This document shows, piece after piece, positions 24,774-56,290 of a DNA stretch of 64,000 bases; position 1 is the stretch's first letter, and the number at the start of each line of letters is the position of its first letter. The stretch lies in the sequence record NC_061451.1. One strand, given 5' to 3'. A model generated the notes under the pieces. It was not told the DNA's origin and did not search any database. It was given only the letters and a program-made list of their open reading frames with translations. Both the position numbers and the translations under genes were made by a program.

Positions 24774-27700
24774 TTACACTGACTTGTCTTTCGACGCAGT
24801 GAGTTTCAGTTTGGTCAATGCAGCCAGACACTGTTTCATGTTCGGGATGCTGTAGCCAGCTTTCTGAATACGGTTGATACGCGCTTTCGCACCAGCAACG
24901 TTCTTCACGAAACTAATCCACATACCAGACGACAGGCTGAACGTACCGAACTTACGAGTGTTCGGGATTTTCGTTCCCACGAAGCGTTTCACTTTCGGGT
25001 TAGTCGCAAGGTCGAACATGATGCGCAGACGATCTTCCATCACCATCGGATATGCTTTGATGTGCTTAACATCTTTCGCAGAGGTATGACGAATCTGGAA
25101 GAACTGTTTCAACTGCGACTGCGCCTTAACAGCCAGCTGGTAGTTGAAGCTCAGCTTAGGCGTAGACTCATCGAAGAAGTCCTGAACGAACTCCAGACGG
25201 CGAGAGGACGGACCGTCAAAGTCCAGCTTCTTAGCCTCGATGAAGTCCAAGAACTTCTCAAAGTCAGAGTAGTACGCGCAGTCGATATACACGTAATCCC
25301 CGAACTCGGTGAACTCGAAGTCCTTGAGCGCTTTCGCATCTGGGTCGGTCGCATCAGCATACAGAGCAACGAAGCCGTTGTACACAGTAGGCGTCAGCTC
25401 CAGAGACATATCGGTACCGTCGTCCAGTGTAACAGCAGTACCACGAACAGCCTTGCGCACTTTGTTGTCCAGCGGAGGAAGTTCAGCAGCCTTACGACGA
25501 CGAACACGGGCAGCTGCCTGCTCTACGCCTTCGTTGATTGGCTTACCTTCTTCTTTGTTCGCTTTACGTTGAGTAACGCGGGCGTTCTTACGCTCTTGAG
25601 CCTCAACTTTCTTCTCGGTTGCTTTCGAGTCGGCAGTTTGAGTCTCATCGGTCACGGTGTCTTCGACTTCAACGCGCTTGGCTTCTGCCTCAACACGCTT
25701 GCGGTCTTTAGCTGTCGCCCACGGCTTACGCACTTCAAAGAAGCGTTTCAGATCAGCAGGGGATACCTTACCAGCGTAATGCACTTTGTTCGCAGGCACA
25801 GTAACGATTTCCTCGCCACCAGCAAGACGAACACGCACGGTACTGATAGGGCTGTCCGCACGCAGCTTACCGTCAGCAGTACGAACCGTAACGCTCACGA
25901 TGATACCGTTACCGAACTCAGTCACAACAGGTGCACGGTTCAGCGCGTCTTTCACGTTCTCGCCACTTGAGAAGTTCTGGTTGCGTGCCCAATCAAGCAG
26001 ACGCTCCAGTCCCCAGTTATGACGGTCTGGGATCTTCTGGTTAGCAACGATAGGTACCTGCTCCATGATACGGAAGTCACGCAGAGCCGGAGTAGCAGGC
26101 AGCGGCTGCATTGCTGCAATCGTTGTCTTACGCATCTCTTGGAACTCTTGCGCTTCAATATCGTTCAGGTCACGCTTGGCCAGGAAGTACGGCTTAAAGT
26201 CTTCCATCGTGTTGTTATCGATCAACAGACTTGCATTCATCTTGATTGGAGCAAGCTGATACTGGTCGAGTTTCTCGTAACGCTGGTTACCTTTCTCGTC
26301 GAAACGAGTTTTCTCCAGCGTCTTCCACATCAGACGTGCAACCTTACCTACTTCAAGAGTCTTGTTCGTCATCACCCAATCGATGAACACGGCTTCGCGT
26401 TTCATATCGCCTGGCTTACCGTTCTCATCAAGCACGGCAGCAGCAACATCAGGACGGAAGATACGCGCAGTAGACTGATCGTATGTACCCGGCGACCACG
26501 GTGTGTCACAGCGAATGATACGACTACCCATCTGCATGTTGTGGCCTTCACTGATTGCCTGTTCGTTAGCAATCAGAATCTGCACACGGTCATCGGTCTT
26601 GAACGCGTCAAGGTTGGCCTCTTTGTTCTGGCCTAACTTACCGACTTCACCGTGATACACAACAGCGACCTTCTTATAGTTCTCAGGCAGAGAGTTATAG
26701 ATTGCGTTTGCAGCACGCGTGTAGCGAGTGAACACAATCAACTTGCCCTGAACCTCTGGTTTCCAGTAGTCCGGGTCTTCCGGAGGTGGAACCATTGAAG
26801 GTGGCAGTGTTTGACGCTGGAACTCTTCGGACTGTTTACGCGCCAGATACTTCTGACCCTGATAGACAGCCATATCAAGTTCACGAGGAGTAACGCCCTG
26901 CGTCCAGTTAAAGATTTGTTGCTCTTTGACCAGCGGGTCACGTTCAGGCTGCACTTCAAAGTGCTTGCGAATACGCTCGATGATGGTCAGGACTTTAGCA
27001 GAGACGAACTTGGTGACGCCCGCGTTTTCAAACGTCAGACGAGCAACGTCATCACCCATCGGGTCGGTCAGCATCATCTCCATGCGCTGGAAGTACATGT
27101 TGAGGTCAGCGTTACCTGCGAGCAATGCGCCCAGGTCATCACCTTCTTCAATATCATCTTCGTCAATGTCGTCAGAGGCAGTAGCTTCTGCACCATCCTC
27201 TTCGTCATCTTCACCAGCAGATGCAGCACGGCGTTTGGCGTTGTTAGCAGCTTCCTGCAACTTCTCCAACACCTGAGCATACATCGCGTTATACACCTCT
27301 TGGTGCAGCGATGAGTTAGGCACAGTCGGGTCATCAATCTCAACCTGAATGAAGGTATCGATTGGGTTCGGCAACATGAACGCCCAGTTCTTACGCTTGA
27401 ACGAGATGAACGCCGTGTGGTTAGACATACGCGAGTGAGCACGACGAATCATTTCAATGTCGTCTTTCGCGCCGTCGTATGCAACGTCGAGAGAGTCACC
27501 GAACATCGCAGGCGTCATCAGTGCAGCCTGACCAACAATGTCACGCACGCGGTCAGTTACCAGAGTACCAGTAGCGATACGCGCATAGCGAACAGATGGT
27601 GCGGTGAATACTGCTTTGGTGTTGAAGTGCACCTGAGAGCCTGACTGGCCTCCAGAGAAGTTCTTAACCTTATGCGACTCATCCAGCATAACGTAGCTGA

Positions 27701-30608
27701 AATTGAAGCGGTTAACGAACTCAACAGCACCACGTACGCGAACACGCACGCCACCAATGTCAACGTTGAACGTACCAGTCTGCAAGAAGCTCAGGCCAAC
27801 GATGAAGAGGGTGTTCTGGGGAGCCTGCTTAATCACGTCGTACATACGGTCTTCACCCCAGGAGTTCACGGTGTCAGACGTAATAGGTACGGCGTTCCAA
27901 CCATCAGCAATCTTGTGCAAGTCATCACACCAGTTCGATACGAGGTTGGTAGGGCAGATGATCAGAGGACGAATGTTCTCTTCACCCAGGTCATTCAGCT
28001 CCTGAATGGTAGCAGCAATATCGGACAGACCAATGATTGTCTTACCACCGCCAGGCGCGATAAAGACTGTAGCGTAACGCGGACGGCGGCGCAGTGTTTT
28101 GTGCGCTTCTACCTGATGTGGTAAGAGTGCAGCACCAGCTTTGAGTCCAGGAATACGAATGTCTTCAATCGTGATACCCTGATCAGGCTTAAGGCGTTCA
28201 ATCTCAGTTTCCGCAGATTCGAAGATCTCCAGAGACTTAGGAATGACCGCGCTGTACATCTTGGAGAACGGCAGAATGATTTGCTGCAAACGTTCTGCGC
28301 CTGGCGCTTCGTCGCTTTCAACCAGAGAGCTAAACAGCTTCTTACGATCAGCATTGCCGATAGCAGCAGCCAGCTCACGATACAGCGCACCACCGAAGTA
28401 GTTGTTCAGTCGCGCCATGTCGCTGATTTTGGCAGTCTGACCCATCACAAAGTAATGCGTGTGATTAGGCAGAGACTCCATAGCACCAGCAATGTCACCG
28501 CTCATCTCAGTAACGGTAGTCGCTACCATGTTCGAGCCGCGCAGGCCAGACGCATCGTTGAGCACGCGTAGCATGATACGCATAGCAATCAGACCAGAAT
28601 CACCCTGAGCCAGAGTAAAGTCATTCTCAATCAGACCCGCGTACAGGTTGTTGTCGAGAGAGCTTTCGGTCAGTGACGCGTTCTCTGCATCCATACCGAT
28701 TGCAGCACGCGCTTGCTTGATCAGCGTAGGCAGATCAGGCACCAGCTTGTGGTTGAATGCGAAAGAATACGCAGCCACAGTCTGTGCGATGATGCTAACA
28801 AGGCCATCAACTTCCGAGTCTTCGGTAGTCGTGAACACGATGGTCTTATCGTTGACGCTATCGATCAGTTTGCCCTTCGCAGCTTCCAGTTTAGCCGCCT
28901 GCAACAGCAGGTCATTAGCAACACGATACGAGGTCATGTTACCGCTAGACTGGTTGCTCATGATGTTGCGGATAACGTTCGACGCTGAGCGGAAGTTAGG
29001 CGTTTCGCCAGGCTCTGCAAAGTCGTAACCAAGCATATCAGCAACGTCTAACGAGTTAGGCGCTTTCATACCGACAGTACGGGTTTCGTTAACCGACAGG
29101 CCACCACCGTTCGAGGTGTTAACCACCAGCGCGAAGTCTGGGTCGACGCCGATACACACGTTGCTGAATCGCGTTAACGATTTGGCTTCCGCCTGCATCG
29201 AGTTATCGAAATCGAGGTTGCCGTTCTGAATAGCGAAGATGTTGGTACGCAGCGTCTGGTGTTCAGTAGACAGCGGTACGCCTTTCGCAAACAGATGTTC
29301 CAGCACGCGGTTCAATTCGGTTTCGTAGTTGCGCACCATCTCAACGTCAATGTCTTCACGGCGCGGCAACACAGACAGCGTACCGTTAGGCATGATGGTC
29401 AGATCGTTCTCATCTGCCACAACATCATGGACAGCGTAGCCGAACTTCTCACGCAGTTGTTTGAGCGCAGGCAGACCAGTAGCAGAGGTAACGTAACGTG
29501 GGATACGCGCAGCACGCGTGATACCAGTACGAGTAGAACCACTGATACGGAAGTAATAGCTCGTCCAGCCCTGGAACCAACGATACAGACACATGGTCTG
29601 AGTGTCAGCACCCTGAGAGATGTACTCAACCATCTCTTTGCTCAGGTTAACAATCAGGCCGCCTTCTGCGCGAATGTCGGTAGCAATTGCTACTTCGTTG
29701 AACTCCAGCGGATAGTCGTGGCTGATCTTCATCGCTTCGAGTTTGCGATCAATCATCTGCTTGCCTGGGATAGAGCGCAGGCCCAGAGTCATGAAGTCGC
29801 CGAGCGCATCAACAACGTCTTTGTCCAGATTACGGAACAGGTTGATATCCAGATTGTGCATCTTCGGGTGAACACCACGAAGCGCCGCGTTGTAGATAGA
29901 CCAGTCTTTGCCGAGAGGGATACGAACAACTTTGGTCTGGAACACGTTGGCGTTGGTACGCGCTTCACCGAAGATATCCTTGTACAGGGTCTTCGCGGCG
30001 TTGATAGCTGCCTGAGCAATATCAGAGCTATACACCTGAATGTTCATCTGCTCAAAGTTAGAGTCGTTATCGACACGAGGACGATCACTACCCTGACTGT
30101 TCGTAACGTTGAAGTTACCCGCACCAGCAGCTGGAGACTGCGGGCATGGCGTGCCTGACATGATAATGTCTTTGCCGCCTGGGTACACGGTACTGTTTTC
30201 GATGATAGCGCCTGAGGTATTACTCAAGTTCTCCGCTAACGCCGTTTTGATTTCACGCGACAGCTTACCGCTGTTCAGCAGCACCTGAATCTTGTTCGTG
30301 GACATGTCCACATATTGCTGCACACGCTTGGTGAACTCTTCTGGCGCTACTTCCAGAATGTCTTCGAACTCAGCACCATTACGGATGATGTAGTTGAGCA
30401 AGTCGAATGCTGCATAGATACGGGCGACAGTTGACGCAGAGAACACGGCCAGTGTTTCATAGTGACGGCGTGCTTTGCCTGTCACGTACATCTTGGACAT
30501 GAGCTGCTCGGAGCCGAACGGTACAGGTTTTACCGCCAGCGCCTGATTAAAGCTATCAGCAATTTGCTGGGTCGCTGTGGCGGAGGTACTGATAATCTGA
30601 TTCATCAT
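24774..30608 (-). CDS. Giant SWI2/SNF2-family ATPase/helicase (1944 aa)
   Basis: LLPHQ, APGGGKT, LIICP.NL..NW, LDESH, ATGT, VFTRY, EGHNMQ, WSPGTYDQSTARIFR; ~820-aa uncharacterised N-terminus. Confidence 0.88.
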   Translation of the reverse strand: MMNQIISTSATATQQIADSFNQALAVKPVPFGSEQLMSKMYVTGKARRHYETLAVFSASTVARIYAAFDLLNYIIRNGAEFEDILEVAPEEFTKRVQQYVDMSTNKIQVLLNSGKLSREIKTALAENLSNTSGAIIENSTVYPGGKDIIMSGTPCPQSPAAGAGNFNVTNSQGSDRPRVDNDSNFEQMNIQVYSSDIAQAAINAAKTLYKDIFGEARTNANVFQTKVVRIPLGKDWSIYNAALRGVHPKMHNLDINLFRNLDKDVVDALGDFMTLGLRSIPGKQMIDRKLEAMKISHDYPLEFNEVAIATDIRAEGGLIVNLSKEMVEYISQGADTQTMCLYRWFQGWTSYYFRISGSTRTGITRAARIPRYVTSATGLPALKQLREKFGYAVHDVVADENDLTIMPNGTLSVLPRREDIDVEMVRNYETELNRVLEHLFAKGVPLSTEHQTLRTNIFAIQNGNLDFDNSMQAEAKSLTRFSNVCIGVDPDFALVVNTSNGGGLSVNETRTVGMKAPNSLDVADMLGYDFAEPGETPNFRSASNVIRNIMSNQSSGNMTSYRVANDLLLQAAKLEAAKGKLIDSVNDKTIVFTTTEDSEVDGLVSIIAQTVAAYSFAFNHKLVPDLPTLIKQARAAIGMDAENASLTESSLDNNLYAGLIENDFTLAQGDSGLIAMRIMLRVLNDASGLRGSNMVATTVTEMSGDIAGAMESLPNHTHYFVMGQTAKISDMARLNNYFGGALYRELAAAIGNADRKKLFSSLVESDEAPGAERLQQIILPFSKMYSAVIPKSLEIFESAETEIERLKPDQGITIEDIRIPGLKAGAALLPHQVEAHKTLRRRPRYATVFIAPGGGKTIIGLSDIAATIQELNDLGEENIRPLIICPTNLVSNWCDDLHKIADGWNAVPITSDTVNSWGEDRMYDVIKQAPQNTLFIVGLSFLQTGTFNVDIGGVRVRVRGAVEFVNRFNFSYVMLDESHKVKNFSGGQSGSQVHFNTKAVFTAPSVRYARIATGTLVTDRVRDIVGQAALMTPAMFGDSLDVAYDGAKDDIEMIRRAHSRMSNHTAFISFKRKNWAFMLPNPIDTFIQVEIDDPTVPNSSLHQEVYNAMYAQVLEKLQEAANNAKRRAASAGEDDEEDGAEATASDDIDEDDIEEGDDLGALLAGNADLNMYFQRMEMMLTDPMGDDVARLTFENAGVTKFVSAKVLTIIERIRKHFEVQPERDPLVKEQQIFNWTQGVTPRELDMAVYQGQKYLARKQSEEFQRQTLPPSMVPPPEDPDYWKPEVQGKLIVFTRYTRAANAIYNSLPENYKKVAVVYHGEVGKLGQNKEANLDAFKTDDRVQILIANEQAISEGHNMQMGSRIIRCDTPWSPGTYDQSTARIFRPDVAAAVLDENGKPGDMKREAVFIDWVMTNKTLEVGKVARLMWKTLEKTRFDEKGNQRYEKLDQYQLAPIKMNASLLIDNNTMEDFKPYFLAKRDLNDIEAQEFQEMRKTTIAAMQPLPATPALRDFRIMEQVPIVANQKIPDRHNWGLERLLDWARNQNFSSGENVKDALNRAPVVTEFGNGIIVSVTVRTADGKLRADSPISTVRVRLAGGEEIVTVPANKVHYAGKVSPADLKRFFEVRKPWATAKDRKRVEAEAKRVEVEDTVTDETQTADSKATEKKVEAQERKNARVTQRKANKEEGKPINEGVEQAAARVRRRKAAELPPLDNKVRKAVRGTAVTLDDGTDMSLELTPTVYNGFVALYADATDPDAKALKDFEFTEFGDYVYIDCAYYSDFEKFLDFIEAKKLDFDGPSSRRLEFVQDFFDESTPKLSFNYQLAVKAQSQLKQFFQIRHTSAKDVKHIKAYPMVMEDRLRIMFDLATNPKVKRFVGTKIPNTRKFGTFSLSSGMWISFVKNVAGAKARINRIQKAGYSIPNMKQCLAALTKLKLTASKDKSV

Positions 30609-44498: not shown

Positions 44499-45095
44499 TT
44501 AGACTCTGCCGGTCATAGTAAATTCTTTGCCCGCAGAGTAATCTCCTAAGGCCGCATAAAGAGAATCACGCAACATCTTCTGAATGATATCCGAGTTATA
44601 CGCGGACGCGTCGCGGAAAGCGACTTCAACAGTTTCAGTGCGTGGGTTGATTACAGCATAACGTAGAGGAGCAATCTCCTGAGCGTCACACCACAGATCG
44701 ACAACGTGCTGTAGTCCAGGCGTCATCTGAATTTTGAAATCAGACAGCAGGAACACAGCACTTTGAATTGGCGGCGGAGCAGACTGAGAGACAACAGCAT
44801 TGTCTCCAAGTTTCTCCATAGCCATAGACGCATTGTACACTGAGGAGAATTTCGTTTTCAGTGCAGAGGTCTGTACTACCTTATAGCTATTCGATGAAAT
44901 GCCCTGACGGCGCAGCTTGGCGATACGCACAACGTAATCACCAGAATCGTCTGAGGCAAATGCAACGTAAGCGTAGCTCACGAAGCCAGGCTCCTCACTA
45001 AGCAGCTTGTGGTCGAGGGCACGAACACCCAAGACAGCACTAAGTGCCTGTAGGCCCATCTGAACTTCGCGGGACAGAGACACGTACATTTCCAT
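44499..45095 (-). CDS. Hypothetical protein with the shared N-terminal signal
   Basis: Likely start MEMYVSLSR at 45095; the longer track ORF overlaps the lysin. Confidence 0.6.
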   Translation of the reverse strand: MEMYVSLSREVQMGLQALSAVLGVRALDHKLLSEEPGFVSYAYVAFASDDSGDYVVRIAKLRRQGISSNSYKVVQTSALKTKFSSVYNASMAMEKLGDNAVVSQSAPPPIQSAVFLLSDFKIQMTPGLQHVVDLWCDAQEIAPLRYAVINPRTETVEVAFRDASAYNSDIIQKMLRDSLYAALGDYSAGKEFTMTGRV

Positions 45096-49822: not shown

Positions 49823-49892
49823 AGCGCTTGCCTATGTGTAGTGTATTGTTGATGGACGTTATTTACAGTATTTGAGGCATACAGACAAAAAG

Positions 49893-49917
49893 AAGGGCCA
49901 CCATCTAGGCAGCCCTT
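49893..49917 (-). terminator. Hairpin terminator
   Basis: AAGGGCTGCC-TAGAT-GGTGGCCCTT-CTTTTT. Confidence 0.75.
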
Positions 49918-49924
49918 GCATGTC

Positions 49925-50371
49925 TTAATATCTACGAGGCTTCTTAGGCTTCTTGATCGTAGACTTAGGACGCTTGATAGCCCGCAGTGCTTTGCGTGCT
50001 TCCACAATTTGTTTGGCTACAGTGGAACGACGAGCTTTGACCTGGTCTGTATCTTGGTCAGTGCCTTTCAGCTTATCGAGTCTGTTCCATTCTTGCACCA
50101 GACGATCAACAACACCAGCACGACCTACGCGTTGCTGGTTGATGCGCACAATGTCCTGATGAGTCTTCACGGAGTTTTGTGCGTCTTTCTGTTTAGCACG
50201 CGCAGATGCAACGTGGTCAGAGTTACCCTCAGCAGACTTCTCGTTAAGCTGCTTACGTCTAAGTGCCAGACGGCGTTGCGCTTGCTTGAGTTCGTCTTTG
50301 GAGTTCTCCAGTTGCGTCTGCATGTCTTCAAGAGGACTTGAGCGTGCGCTCAGACTAACGAGAAGTTCCAT
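49925..50371 (-). CDS. Basic coiled-coil protein with the shared N-terminal signal
   Basis: Start MELLVSLSAR at 50371 with GAGGA RBS. Confidence 0.7.
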   Translation of the reverse strand: MELLVSLSARSSPLEDMQTQLENSKDELKQAQRRLALRRKQLNEKSAEGNSDHVASARAKQKDAQNSVKTHQDIVRINQQRVGRAGVVDRLVQEWNRLDKLKGTDQDTDQVKARRSTVAKQIVEARKALRAIKRPKSTIKKPKKPRRY

Positions 50372-50378
50372 AAGTTCC

Positions 50379-50930
50379 TCACACAGGCTGTATGGTAATG
50401 ATCTGGACGCCTTGTTCATTACGCGACTTGAGAATGCGGAAGCGGAAGTCTATTGGATAAATCCATTCGAGTTCATCCATAAGACCATCAAGAATCATCT
50501 CACGTTCTTCTTCGTCACCACCGAATTCTTTATCAAGATCAGCAGCCATGATAAGATTGTACGTGCGTTGCCAATAGTTGAAGGCTTTGTTCTTTGGCCC
50601 AGGAAGAATCTCCAGCATCGTATCTGTCTTGCCTGCCTTTGCAAAACCTTTAGCAGTAGCGAAGTCTTGACTGAACGACAGGTACTTGTTGATCATCACG
50701 AAAGGATTCTTAGCCTGCTTAAACAGAGCCATGAGTTCTTTTTCGTACAGACCACGATACAGAGGCATCTCAGGACGTTCGGGATATTTAGCGATCAGAT
50801 CATCAAGCGCAGGGCTGGAGCGATTAGCGTCAATCACATGCCCTTTATCGTGGAGCATCGTCCACATAATGTCTTGCTGTCTGTCTGTGTAGGCAGGTAT
50901 CTTAGCACTGAGGCTAACCATAAGTTCCAT
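50379..50930 (-). CDS. R-S-E clade ADP-ribosyltransferase (Alt/ModA/Vip2-like catalytic domain)
   Basis: PLYRGL (Arg), YLSFS (S-x-S), DELEWIYP (E-x-E), C-terminal F.I....I.I strands; N-terminus MELMVSLSA. Confidence 0.78.
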   Translation of the reverse strand: MELMVSLSAKIPAYTDRQQDIMWTMLHDKGHVIDANRSSPALDDLIAKYPERPEMPLYRGLYEKELMALFKQAKNPFVMINKYLSFSQDFATAKGFAKAGKTDTMLEILPGPKNKAFNYWQRTYNLIMAADLDKEFGGDEEEREMILDGLMDELEWIYPIDFRFRILKSRNEQGVQIITIQPV

Positions 50931-50946
50931 GCATGTTCCTTAAAAG

Positions 50947-50969
50947 AAAAGGCGGACCGAAGCCCGCCT
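50947..50969 (-). terminator. Intrinsic terminator with UUCG loop
   Basis: AGGCGGGC-TTCG-GTCCGCCT-TTTCTTTT. Confidence 0.8.
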
Positions 50970-51058
50970 CTGAGTAATGTGCGCTATGCACTCGACGGTT
51001 AAGTCTCCTGCTATTGTTTTACCTCGTTGCAGTAAACGAGGAGATAAGGATCACCTCC

Positions 51059-51595
51059 TCAGACGGTACCTAATACTTCAAGCACATCTTCGTCGTCCAC
51101 ACTTGCAGACCACGAACGCATAACAGAAGCATTGCCTCGATTGCCTGTCAGCATTGATTTAACTGCTGGTGTGGCTTCGATTTCGGCATAGTGTTCCAAG
51201 AGAGCTTTGTCATCTTTGAACCACATAATGGAGTTACCATCCTTAGGGACGATCAAGAATTGGGTAGGCTTCTGGGTGACGTTTAACGTCAGGTAGTAAT
51301 CACCAGCACCTTTAGGAGTCAGCATCGGCATTGGCTTCATCGCATACATGAAGTCCTTAGCGTGCATGAGTTTCTGATCGCCGAGCAACCAGATTGCGCC
51401 TTCTTCGCCTTGACGCACAGCAGACAAATCGCCTTTACGTGTTGCAATCGTTCCGAATACATCTTTATCGAAACGTGACAGACCGAAGATCAGCGAGGCG
51501 AGACGCTTCAGGTCCGGGGTCGTGCATGGACTGTTGATCACAGCCATACCCTCAGACCCAAGTGTGAATTTAGAGAGTGAAATAAAGAGTTCCAT
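51059..51595 (-). CDS. Hypothetical protein with the shared N-terminal signal
   Basis: MELFISLSK at 51595 (alternative start 51607); ACTAATTT at 51630-51637. Confidence 0.7.
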   Translation of the reverse strand: MELFISLSKFTLGSEGMAVINSPCTTPDLKRLASLIFGLSRFDKDVFGTIATRKGDLSAVRQGEEGAIWLLGDQKLMHAKDFMYAMKPMPMLTPKGAGDYYLTLNVTQKPTQFLIVPKDGNSIMWFKDDKALLEHYAEIEATPAVKSMLTGNRGNASVMRSWSASVDDEDVLEVLGTV

Positions 51596-51660
51596 CGTAA
51601 CGTCCATACCGTCTTATGAATGTATGGTAAAATTAGTGTTCCTTAAGACATTTCTGAAAT

Positions 51661-51690
51661 AAAAAAGGGCGACCCTTAGGCCACCCTTTT
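51661..51690 (-). terminator. Hairpin terminator after dnaX
   Basis: AAAAGGGTGGCC-TAA-GGGTCGCCCTTTTTT. Confidence 0.75.
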
Positions 51691-52989: not shown

Positions 52990-53026
52990 GATGCTATTGC
53001 CCTTTAGTTTGATGCTTACTGTCGAT

Positions 53027-53034
53027 ATTTACAG
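53027..53034 (-). promoter_or_regulatory. Putative middle promoter (CTGTAAAT)
   Basis: 38 nt upstream of the dnaX ATG. Confidence 0.55.
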
Positions 53035-53340: not shown

Positions 53341-53419
53341 AACATCTCCTGAATATTAAACCTCAACGTTCTTGAATTATGTTTACAGATTGCTTCGGTC
53401 CGTCCTTGCGATTTAAAGT

Positions 53420-53785
53420 CAGAATAGTCTTAAACTCCAATAAGCTCTTGTTAGAACGTATTGGAGTCCACCCTGTCAGATGACGGTCATTCAGGGCTTT
53501 CTCCCCGCACACTTATATAGCGCCGTGCGGCAGGCTGCGCTCGCGAGGTCTTATGTTTTCCACAGCAGGTGGTCCAGGAGGTAGCGTCCTCTGAAAAGAT
53601 ACCCGCCGCACAACAGCCTCGCTATCGGCCAATCAGCGATACGCGGTGTTACGCTGAATCGACCTAAGTGACTCTGGCCGAGTCGTGTACAAAAAAGAGT
53701 TCGGTCCCAATCAAAAAGATGGCGAAAAAGAAAGGGACCGAACAAAAGGCACTCAGCGCAAACTCCTTATGCACTGTTTTTGTAC
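53420..53785 (-). ncRNA. Candidate structured non-coding RNA (unknown family)
   Basis: No credible ORF; at least nine predicted helices; ACTAATTT motif at 53792-53799; ends in a 9-bp hairpin followed by TTT. Confidence 0.45.
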
Positions 53786-53825
53786 TTGGGAAAATTAGTG
53801 ACATTCCCTTTTATTCAGAAAATTC

Positions 53826-54738: not shown

Positions 54739-55329
54739 CTATGCCCTCAGGTCAACCAATATAGATCCGCTTAGGTCACGCAGCATCTCTCTACCAAGAG
54801 GCGTGTACATGATTTGATGCACAGCAATACGTTCGAGGAACTGCTTGCTGGAATGTACATCGTGTCCTGTACGCTTTCGAACAAACTCTATGATCGAGGG
54901 AGCAGGTTGAATGAGGAACGTCAGTATCTCCGCATCGTGGAGAACACTACCCATGTCAGTGATTGGCTTTAGCTCAGTCTCCTGATCAAGGATATATCGG
55001 ATAACGCGTTCCTCGTTACCAGTTTTAGGATTATGCTTAAAGAAGGTGCGAGCAGATTCAACCATAAGTTTGAAATCATACTCGTCATCCGCAGTAGGCA
55101 TTCTGAGAAAGAGAGCAGCAAGCAACAAATTTATTTCCACCTGCGGACCACGTTCAATGTTGAGCATCGCGTGTGCGGTGAGCACTACATCAAGCGCATA
55201 GTCACGGGTATACAGAGGATGAGAGGCTACTGTTCTGTCAAAATAGTCAAGGGCTGTGCGAAGTCCGTGACGAGATAACAGGTGCTCTGCCTTAACACGA
55301 GCTAGGCGTTGCACCCTAGTCTTCTCCAC
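54739..55329 (-). CDS. Possible inactive HD-domain protein
   Basis: PLYTRDYALDVV...LLLAALFLRM...LHDAEIL parallels PYHN..H..DV...LLAALFHD...DADL with the His/Asp ligands lost. Confidence 0.4.
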   Translation of the reverse strand: MEKTRVQRLARVKAEHLLSRHGLRTALDYFDRTVASHPLYTRDYALDVVLTAHAMLNIERGPQVEINLLLAALFLRMPTADDEYDFKLMVESARTFFKHNPKTGNEERVIRYILDQETELKPITDMGSVLHDAEILTFLIQPAPSIIEFVRKRTGHDVHSSKQFLERIAVHQIMYTPLGREMLRDLSGSILVDLRA

Positions 55330-56290
55330 CGATCTCTTTGAGGCTGTTCTTGATTGCTTTGCGCAGCGTCTTGCCTACGTCAATGCCATCAACATGTTTT
55401 GCGAACACATGCGCAAACAGCGTCGTCGGATTTTTCATGATTGCTTTATCGAGGTCAGGACGACCCTCAGCGATTTGCATTTCGCCAGGCCACAGTTCAG
55501 CAACGGCGGAGCTATCGTTAGCGGCGATAAGCTCAAGCTCGCGGACTGAAATCGAGTTCTGGCGAGCAATCGTTCGGAAGATGAGATCAACGAACGGCAG
55601 GAGATCTTCTGACACAACGTTCTTCACGTCTTTGGCATCGCCAGCACGTTGGAAGTCTTCCATGAGATCTGTCAGGACTTTCTTGTCGATCTTATGCACG
55701 TTGCGCAGTTTGTTGAACAACACCATCCAGCGAACTTTACGCTTGGAACTAATCAGGTGCGTCCACACACTTTCGCCGAGAGCAATCAGCAAACGATTGT
55801 ACACGTCAACTGAAACTGACTCACGGCTAACGAACACGGTCAGCTCATCATGCCACTCGTCTTTCTTAAACTTAGAACGGAACGAGTGTGTCTTGGAGCC
55901 TGACTGCTGGACAAAGTTGATGCGCTTGCAACGGCGCAGTGCTTCATGCAGCTTGTACTTCTCGATCACTTTCGGGAGTCGCTTCACTCCCTTACGACAC
56001 GCTTTGGCGCAATCGGTTTCACGACCGTAGAGCGCAAGAGAAGGAAGGCCAGACATTACAGCGAGGCTCGCGTAAGGTCGGACGGTAACTCCACAAACAG
56101 ACATGCCGGGTTCCGGGTCTTTGCCCAGTACGGCAAGAACATCGCCTGCTTTAGGACTGAACTTAATTGACTCTGGGTCAGGAGTACCGAGTGTTGCAGC
56201 CAGAAGGCCGACGGTCTTGCCTGTCGCCAGAACCAAATGATTTTTGTTGCCCTGCCTCACGACAAGGTAATCTTGCTCACTATGTTTCAT
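55316..56290 (-). CDS. Possible inactive zincin-like metallopeptidase-domain protein
   Basis: LLIALGESVW versus canonical LLHELGH.VW; NPTTLFAHVFA versus N..E.FAE.FA. Confidence 0.4.
   Translation of the reverse strand: MKHSEQDYLVVRQGNKNHLVLATGKTVGLLAATLGTPDPESIKFSPKAGDVLAVLGKDPEPGMSVCGVTVRPYASLAVMSGLPSLALYGRETDCAKACRKGVKRLPKVIEKYKLHEALRRCKRINFVQQSGSKTHSFRSKFKKDEWHDELTVFVSRESVSVDVYNRLLIALGESVWTHLISSKRKVRWMVLFNKLRNVHKIDKKVLTDLMEDFQRAGDAKDVKNVVSEDLLPFVDLIFRTIARQNSISVRELELIAANDSSAVAELWPGEMQIAEGRPDLDKAIMKNPTTLFAHVFAKHVDGIDVGKTLRKAIKNSLKEIGGED

Follow-up and report, generated by a model that had tools for sequence, protein, structure and literature searches.

The stretch of DNA analyzed here (hereafter the window) comprises 64,000 nucleotides of the genome of Erwinia phage pEa_SNUABM_7 (NC_061451.1; 100% identity), a Snuvirus of 265,635 bp whose host is Erwinia amylovora. 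A window position equals the record position minus 124,000, and record coordinates are used for genes outside the window (gp243, gp253 and gp154). On the minus strand three neighbouring genes, gp210, gp209 and gp208, encode proteins that begin with M-E-L-x-[VI]-S-L-S (M-E-L-F-I-S-L-S, M-E-L-M-V-S-L-S and M-E-L-L-V-S-L-S, respectively). An earlier note on this DNA had drawn attention to this shared start and had described the three genes as otherwise unrelated. Both observations were borne out, the second by blastp clustering, in which gp210, gp209 and gp208 did not match each other once the leader had been removed. In RefSeq the cassette is flanked by the clamp-loader gene gp211 and the SbcC-like gene gp205; gp209 is labelled "RNA polymerase ADP-ribosylase", and gp210 and gp208 are labelled hypothetical. 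The longest open reading frames (ORFs) of gp210 and gp208 open 4 and 16 codons upstream of M-E-L, respectively; the M-E-L start is the one used by RefSeq and by every leader-bearing orthologue examined.

A shared N-terminal leader on unrelated proteins

A six-frame scan of the whole genome revealed three further leader genes (gp200, gp243 and gp253), making a total of six; the leader of gp200 reads M-E-M-Y-V-S-L-S. A degenerate DNA pattern for the leader gave 7, 5, 7 and 4 hits in pEa_SNUABM_7, Alexandra, pEa_SNUABM_32 and Y3, respectively, and the reversed control of the strict pattern gave none in each of the four genomes. One of the seven hits in pEa_SNUABM_7, at record position 89511 (M-K-I-Q-V-T-L-C), is a chance match within another gene and was discarded, which leaves the six tagged genes. 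The leader-like start of the NAD-ligase gp156 (M-K-V-R-L-S-I-S) was also judged to be due to chance because it is absent from the gp156 orthologues. With a looser pattern, whose hits were translated by eye, about 6-9 leader-like gene starts were found in each of Yoloswag, JA11, Yersinia phage fHe-Yen9-02 and pEa_SNUABM_5, against 2-4 in the control. Altogether, relatives in six other genera carry 4-9 leader genes apiece.

The consensus drawn from 52 database proteins of the gp209-type and gp208 families is M at position 1, [KED] at position 2, [ILV] at position 3, any residue at position 4, [VI] at position 5, and an invariant S6-L7-S8. The invariant serines are encoded by AGY and TCN codons alike, and the leucine by several codons. 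The use of both serine codon families indicates that selection acts on the leader peptide and not on the DNA. This bears directly on the proposal that the leader is conserved on account of a nucleic-acid signal at the 5′ end of the mRNA, either a translation-initiation enhancer or a recombination site. Such a signal would explain why the motif always opens the reading frame, and the cassette has unusual conserved RNA elements in its vicinity, but the proposal is effectively refuted by the codon usage. Moreover, residue 4 is free to vary while S-L-S is invariant in all 52 proteins, and the peptide motif is found again within the scaffold protein described below; we attach almost no probability to this proposal. 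The leader is certainly a functional, modular signal that operates at the protein level on unrelated cargos.

The diversity of these cargos is considerable. When the leader was removed, blastp clustering sorted the tagged proteins from four genomes into nine families unrelated to each other; with ART-PolyVal and a family of 78-94 amino acids the number of cargo families is at least 11. Searches of Pfam and PHROGs gave no function for gp210, gp208, gp200, gp243, gp253, the 256-amino-acid protein of Y3, or the cargos of 506 and 159 amino acids in Alexandra, and the ESM Atlas returned nothing for gp210.

The exception is gp209, which the earlier note had taken for a compact ADP-ribosyltransferase (ART) with its motifs placed directly after the tag. 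The enzymatic assignment was confirmed: judged by its sequence, the protein is a member of the ModA/ModB family of R-S-ExE ARTs. It matches PHROG 832 (2.6e-13) as well as modB genes of T4-like phages in tblastn (down to 2e-6), and residues 14-183 align with ModB of Enterobacter phage CIP9 at 29% identity (pairwise E 2e-21), with the segments P-L-Y-R-G, S-F-S and E-L-E-W lying opposite their ModB counterparts. The residues R59, S85, S87, E153 and E155 are invariant across 8 gp209 homologues. Their position differs from the one originally described, since R59, S85-x-S87 and E153-x-E155 sit in the domain whose alignment to ModB starts at residue 14. The family assignment is strengthened by Foldseek, in which all 59 hits of the weak gp209 model with E <0.001 are R-S-E ARTs, including HopU1, C3, VahC, CDTa, iota and ExoS, although with template-modelling (TM) scores of only 0.3-0.4. 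In Pfam the protein itself found only DRAT, at an E-value of 0.09, which falls short of the cut-off, while its homologues bear a precomputed PF26816; a profile search against solved structures gave no sequence match. For the R-S-E class of ARTs the E-x-E motif is an established rule of target specificity, and by this rule gp209 is probably specific for arginine. Taken alone, gp209 is an ordinary and already annotated enzyme.

Table 1. Features of the tagged cassette and of related loci in pEa_SNUABM_7 (window positions unless marked as record positions).
Feature	Position	Strand	Description
gp210	51059-51595	-	178 aa, tagged; PHROG 31786, no function assigned; leader codons 51572-51595
gp209	50379-50930	-	183 aa, ModB-like R-S-ExE ADP-ribosyltransferase by sequence; leader codons 50907-50930
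gp208	49925-50371	-	148 aa, tagged, basic, coiled-coil-like, K/R-rich C-terminus; PHROG 28362; leader codons 50348-50371
gp200	44499-45095	-	198 aa from leader start, tagged; directly after the endolysin gene
gp183	24774-30608	-	1944-aa SNF2-type helicase; short N-terminal leader ending I-S-T-S
gp216	55316-56290	-	324 aa, conserved; peptidase per PHROGs
gp243	record 197846-198169		107 aa, acidic; leader M-E-M-L-V-S-L-S
gp253	record 207043-207702		leader M-K-I-F-V-S-L-S
Terminator-like hairpin	51663-51690	-	intrinsic type; ends the clamp-loader (gp211) transcription unit
CTAATTT, promoter-like motif A	51630-51636	-	34 nt before the M-E-L start of gp210
Structured intergenic element	50931-51058	-	between gp210 and gp209; conserved
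Terminator-like hairpin	50948-50971	-	inside the spacer, directly before the ribosome-binding site of gp209
Terminator-like hairpin	49893-49917	-	ends the tagged cassette
TGTAAATA, promoter-like motif B	49860-49867	-	starts the next unit, gp207 onward
Further promoter-like motif	53026-53033	-	

The leader motif in head proteins and the prohead protease

We looked for the logic known from T4, where a leader ends in a cleavage motif that is also found in the scaffold and capsid precursors. The leader of pEa_SNUABM_7 ends in hydrophobic-x-S-x-S, and the head module encodes the capsid protein gp147, gp148, an acidic scaffold-like protein of 690 amino acids (gp149), gp150 and the protease gp151. 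The motif occurs 15 times in gp149 where 1.9 occurrences are expected (Poisson p 9e-11), which places this protein at the top of the whole proteome. Four of the copies read F-D-S-E-S, and one reads L-V-S-L-S, the same as the end of the leader. In addition, 6 of the 17 S-Q-S sequences in the proteome are found in the capsid protein, the scaffold and the portal.

These sites are also conserved. Those retained in the orthologues of five other genera include two S-x-S sites in the N-terminus of the capsid protein, sites at the two termini and in the interior of the scaffold protein, and F-x-S-x-S immediately ahead of the conserved core of the portal; PaBG keeps only the first site of the capsid protein. 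The capsid protein aligns with the full-length 282-residue capsid protein of phage G (6WKK) only from around residue 73, which indicates that its first ~70 residues are an add-on, ending at V-H-S-Q-S68. Together, the head-protein motif and the leader fit a protease that would recognize an S-x-S-containing site at the end of the leader. A glycosyltransferase gene, gp154 (record 114092-115324), adjoins the prohead protease genes in pEa_SNUABM_7, and such a gene does so in Y3 and in PaBG; alternatively, S-x-S in the head proteins may represent glycosylation sequons.

The candidate protease, gp151, belongs to PHROG 18299, a family of head maturation proteases. Its structural model (predicted local distance difference test, pLDDT, 84.5) has T4 gp21 as best match (5JBL; Z 9.7, root-mean-square deviation 2.9, 140 residues), followed by herpesvirus proteases (Z 5-6). 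Two residues that do not vary among 35 homologues, H124 and S181, are candidates for a role in catalysis.

A cleavable leader might also serve latency only, being removed by the prohead protease or by another one so that enzymes stay inactive until late, with no role in targeting or injection. This would agree with the candidate cleavage motif that closes the leader and with the harm that an ART can do to the producing cell. We nevertheless regard it as improbable: most tagged cargos are small and do not look enzymatic, as exemplified by the basic gp208 and the acidic gp243, and in the structural model a leader of 8 residues plus a disordered stretch would be unlikely to block an active site ~50 residues away. 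Furthermore, the prohead protease works inside proheads, so that cleavage of the leader by this enzyme would already imply incorporation.

Promoter motifs, spacer RNA and the exchangeable slot

Two classes of promoter-like motifs were obtained from k-mer enrichment in upstream intergenic regions. The first, CTAATTT, is located 22-66 nt upstream of virion-operon starts (for example those of the tail sheath homologue gp143, the PAAR protein gp122, gp118, gp188 and gp191) and upstream of the tagged genes gp210 and gp253. By the ORF set, 12 of its 21 genomic copies are placed in this way (binomial p 9e-14), a count that rises to about 14 after two more were checked against the RefSeq gene table, and near-matches are found ahead of the genes for capsid, scaffold, depolymerase and endolysin. 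The second, TGTAAATA, precedes replication genes, including the neighbours gp211 and gp207, and has 8 copies in the window against 1.4 expected. Both classes lie ~22-66 nt before start codons and are kept in related genera; CTAATTT is retained upstream of the gp210 orthologues in six genera. Judging by the genes that follow it, CTAATTT would mark late genes. One further copy (53792-53798, minus strand) is present in a 485-nt gene-free gap at 53341-53825. Two other sequences were tried and rejected: TACATTCA, common to the upstream regions of gp210 and gp253, is no general motif, with 8 genomic copies where 8 are expected, and the invariant intergenic GTGCATAGCGC was ruled out as a promoter class because it occurs only once in the genome. 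The only transcript data available came from one wastewater metatranscriptome and covered a small share of the window, and the GenBank records examined carried no mass-spectrometry notes.

The cassette is thus ordered as terminator, CTAATTT, gp210, a structured spacer with a hairpin, gp209, gp208, terminator and TGTAAATA, and this layout is held in six other genera. The first nucleotides of the spacer, immediately past the stop codon of gp210, are GGAGGTGATCC (51048-51058), an 11-nt perfect complement of the 3′ end of 16S rRNA. In its hairpin, 5 of the 6 pairs show two-sided compensatory changes (each in 1-3 of seven sequences); an invariant small hairpin and then a terminator-like hairpin follow before the ribosome-binding site of the ART gene. 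The element is conserved in seven phages, is unique within the genome and corresponds to no Rfam family. It may gate the transcription or the translation of the variable slot that it precedes.

The cassette position bears on an alternative in which the tagged proteins stay inside the infected cell. In this alternative, the principal competitor of head loading, the leader would dock onto another shared partner, such as a chaperone, a factor for export or for the membrane, the sliding clamp or the late-transcription machinery, or else gp216, and the cargos would be intracellular and never packaged. The cassette indeed adjoins the clamp-loader gene amid replication genes, T4 ModA and ModB as the nearest ART homologues are intracellular early enzymes, and gp216, a conserved protein classed as a peptidase by PHROGs and without sequence match in Pfam or PDB, is encoded five genes away and is also present in JA11. 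However, docking leaves unexplained why the motif is enriched and kept in the scaffold and in the N-termini of the capsid protein and the portal, and why the unit bears the promoter motif of virion genes. The leader also lacks a hydrophobic core of signal-peptide length and does not match the usual clamp-binding consensus. We consider docking to be unlikely.

Comparison of the locus between phages showed that the gp210 and gp208 families are always present between the clamp-loader and SbcC genes, while the content between or after them varies. pEa_SNUABM_7 and pEa_SNUABM_32 carry a ModB-like ART in this slot (43% identical to each other), Y3 a tagged protein of 256 amino acids to which no function was assigned, and Alexandra, JA11 and Yoloswag a tagged protein of 78-94 amino acids; in some metagenomic relatives the slot is empty. 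In Dickeya phage JA11 and a metagenomic relative it contains a stand-alone tagged ART-PolyVal of 225 amino acids (PF18760, 2.1e-27). Of all the comparative data, the occurrence of two unrelated ART families with the same leader and in the same slot is what most suggests that effector cargo is placed there.

Other tagged proteins show variations at their ends. In Yoloswag and pEa_SNUABM_5 the gp210 orthologue is leaderless, and its start coincides almost exactly with the end of the leader in the orthologue of the Yersinia phage. At the C-terminus of gp210 (51059-51115, minus strand), five orthologues share hydrophobic-R-S-[WT]-S (R-S-W-S in pEa_SNUABM_7) followed by an acidic tail of 13-16 residues. 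The two leaderless orthologues are also devoid of this tail; that of JA11 has the leader and no tail. By analogy with T4 Alt, the acidic tail may be a C-terminal propeptide. In the case of gp200, the RefSeq start (45155) produces a 53-nt overlap with the endolysin gene; the start at the leader (45095), located 60 nt downstream, leaves an 8-nt gap to that gene and agrees with the pEa_SNUABM_32 orthologue, and the RefSeq start is probably wrong. A second motif, V-V-S-Q-S, occurs in this protein at residues 121-125 of the RefSeq-length ORF (101-105 from the leader start); like the C-terminal motif of gp210, it may be an additional cleavage site. Finally, gp183 and its orthologues in five genera possess a short leader ending in [IF]-S-T-S. 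It is less certain than the others but may represent a variant leader for loading or cleavage, which would imply that a giant ATPase is packaged.

Proposed head loading of the tagged proteins and known systems

The best single explanation of these data, and in our opinion a moderately probable one, is that M-[EKD]-[ILV]-x-[VI]-S-L-S acts as an N-terminal propeptide that loads cargo into the assembling prohead and is removed there. We infer the late timing, the cleavage, the packaging, the injection and the targets of the tagged proteins as follows. They would be produced late in infection and would join the scaffold core of the prohead, where the gp21-fold protease gp151 would cut off the leader at or beside S-x-S. 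The same step would process the scaffold-like gp149, the N-terminal extension of the capsid protein and the N-terminus of the portal. The cargo would then remain in the head with the DNA and enter the next cell along with it. The genes gp210, gp209 and gp208 would form a late-transcribed cargo cassette with a middle slot that is exchangeable between phages. As injected cargo, gp209 would, like T4 Alt, take effect as soon as a cell is infected, before phage gene expression, and most plausibly on host RNA polymerase or on translation proteins. The earlier note had anticipated an injected ART, possibly with co-injected partners, on the model of T4 Alt; what speaks for T4-like head loading by the leader is circumstantial and comparative, namely the motif at presumed maturation sites, the gp21 fold, the virion-type promoter motif and the exchangeable slot.

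Several observations weigh against this explanation. The tagged genes are found among replication genes, outside the head module, and T4 ModA and ModB, the nearest homologues of the ART, are not packaged. In PaBG, whose protease is 47% identical, the leader is not enriched. Both gp243 and the ART gene are preceded by a terminator-like hairpin and have no promoter motif of their own, so that their timing rests on read-through. S-x-S is a short motif whose presumed cleavage is deduced from enrichment and conservation; the regular expression for hydrophobic-x-S-x-S also hits the catalytic Y-L-S-F-S of the ART, which means that not every match is a site. The AlphaFold model of gp209 is poor (pLDDT 57), with residues 1-43 disordered (pLDDT <50). 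Last, the known proteases of the gp21 type (T4, phiKZ and SPN3US) all cut after Glu (PMC9026906).

The closest parallel to head loading by a leader is provided by T4. Its capsid targeting sequence (CTS) has 10 residues and ends in a gp21 site that also occurs in the scaffold and capsid precursors, Alt sheds an N-terminal propeptide of 7 residues, and the internal-protein cargo differs between relatives of T4 (PMC9026906). The resemblance to the CTS of the internal proteins IPI-III and to the Alt propeptide concerns a short leader (10 and 7 residues in T4, 8 in pEa_SNUABM_7) on unrelated, often small and basic proteins, the presence of a gp21-fold protease together with a leader that ends in its motif (in pEa_SNUABM_7 a candidate site), the scattering of cargo genes outside the head module, and a variable set of cargos, one of which is an ART. 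In contrast, the two leaders have no sequence similarity, the site being L/I-x-E in T4 and the candidate site hydrophobic-x-S-x-S in pEa_SNUABM_7. The lineages also differ (Straboviridae versus Snuvirus, Alexandravirus, Y3, Yoloswag and Salmondvirus), and packaging and cleavage, experimental facts in T4, are proposed for pEa_SNUABM_7. As it has no terminal Glu, the leader is an analogue of the T4 CTS and not a member of it by sequence. Full-text literature searches yielded no account of the leader or of an S-x-S maturation motif; if it loads the head, the leader would be a variation on the head-targeting principle of T4 in another clade of jumbo phages.

The comparison with T4 ModA/ModB (PHROG 832) shows full-length homology to gp209, a similar size and aligned R, S-x-S and E-x-E motifs. 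Only the N-terminus differs: the first 29 residues of ModB are replaced in gp209 by the leader and a short linker. In contrast to the T4 enzymes, which are early, non-packaged and leaderless, the unit of gp209 has a virion-type promoter motif. The jumbo phages phiKZ and SPN3US likewise encode a diverged gp21-type protease and have a short cut motif in many head proteins, with redundant sites in scaffold or inner-body proteins. They differ by cutting after Glu (S/A-X-E), and no uniform leader on small cargos has been described for them; the regions of pEa_SNUABM_7 that were read gave no hint of an inner body or a virion RNA polymerase of the phiKZ type. The ART-PolyVal domain of polyvalent proteins (PF18760), which occur in phages and conjugative elements, offers a further parallel, as it is an ART thought to be delivered with incoming DNA, and the JA11 copy is leader-tagged and lies in the same slot. 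It is, however, of another ART family than gp209, and in polyvalent proteins it is part of a giant multi-domain protein, whereas it stands alone with 225 amino acids in JA11.

In its widest form our proposal is more tentative, and we advance it as a possibility that falls short of being probable. The clade of Alexandravirus, Snuvirus, Y3, Yoloswag and Salmondvirus would use an undescribed loading code, in which a protease of the gp21 fold would recognize the leader, having changed its specificity from Glu to a hydrophobic-x-S-x-S site. The injected proteome, including two ART families and possibly an SNF2 helicase, would be readable from the genome, and the enzyme slot may be gated by a structured RNA. 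If the leader is a head-loading signal, sequence alone would suffice to list what these fire-blight and soft-rot phages inject, and the list would include small and tractable candidates for effectors of host takeover or anti-defence (the ModB-like ART, ART-PolyVal, and the basic and acidic small proteins). The leader would provide a tag of 8 residues with which selected proteins could be packed into the head of a jumbo phage, in the way that the T4 leader has been used. It would also represent a second, independent case of the T4 logic of leader, protease site and exchangeable cargo, in a distant lineage and with another protease specificity, and would bear on how proteases of the gp21/assemblin type change their sites.

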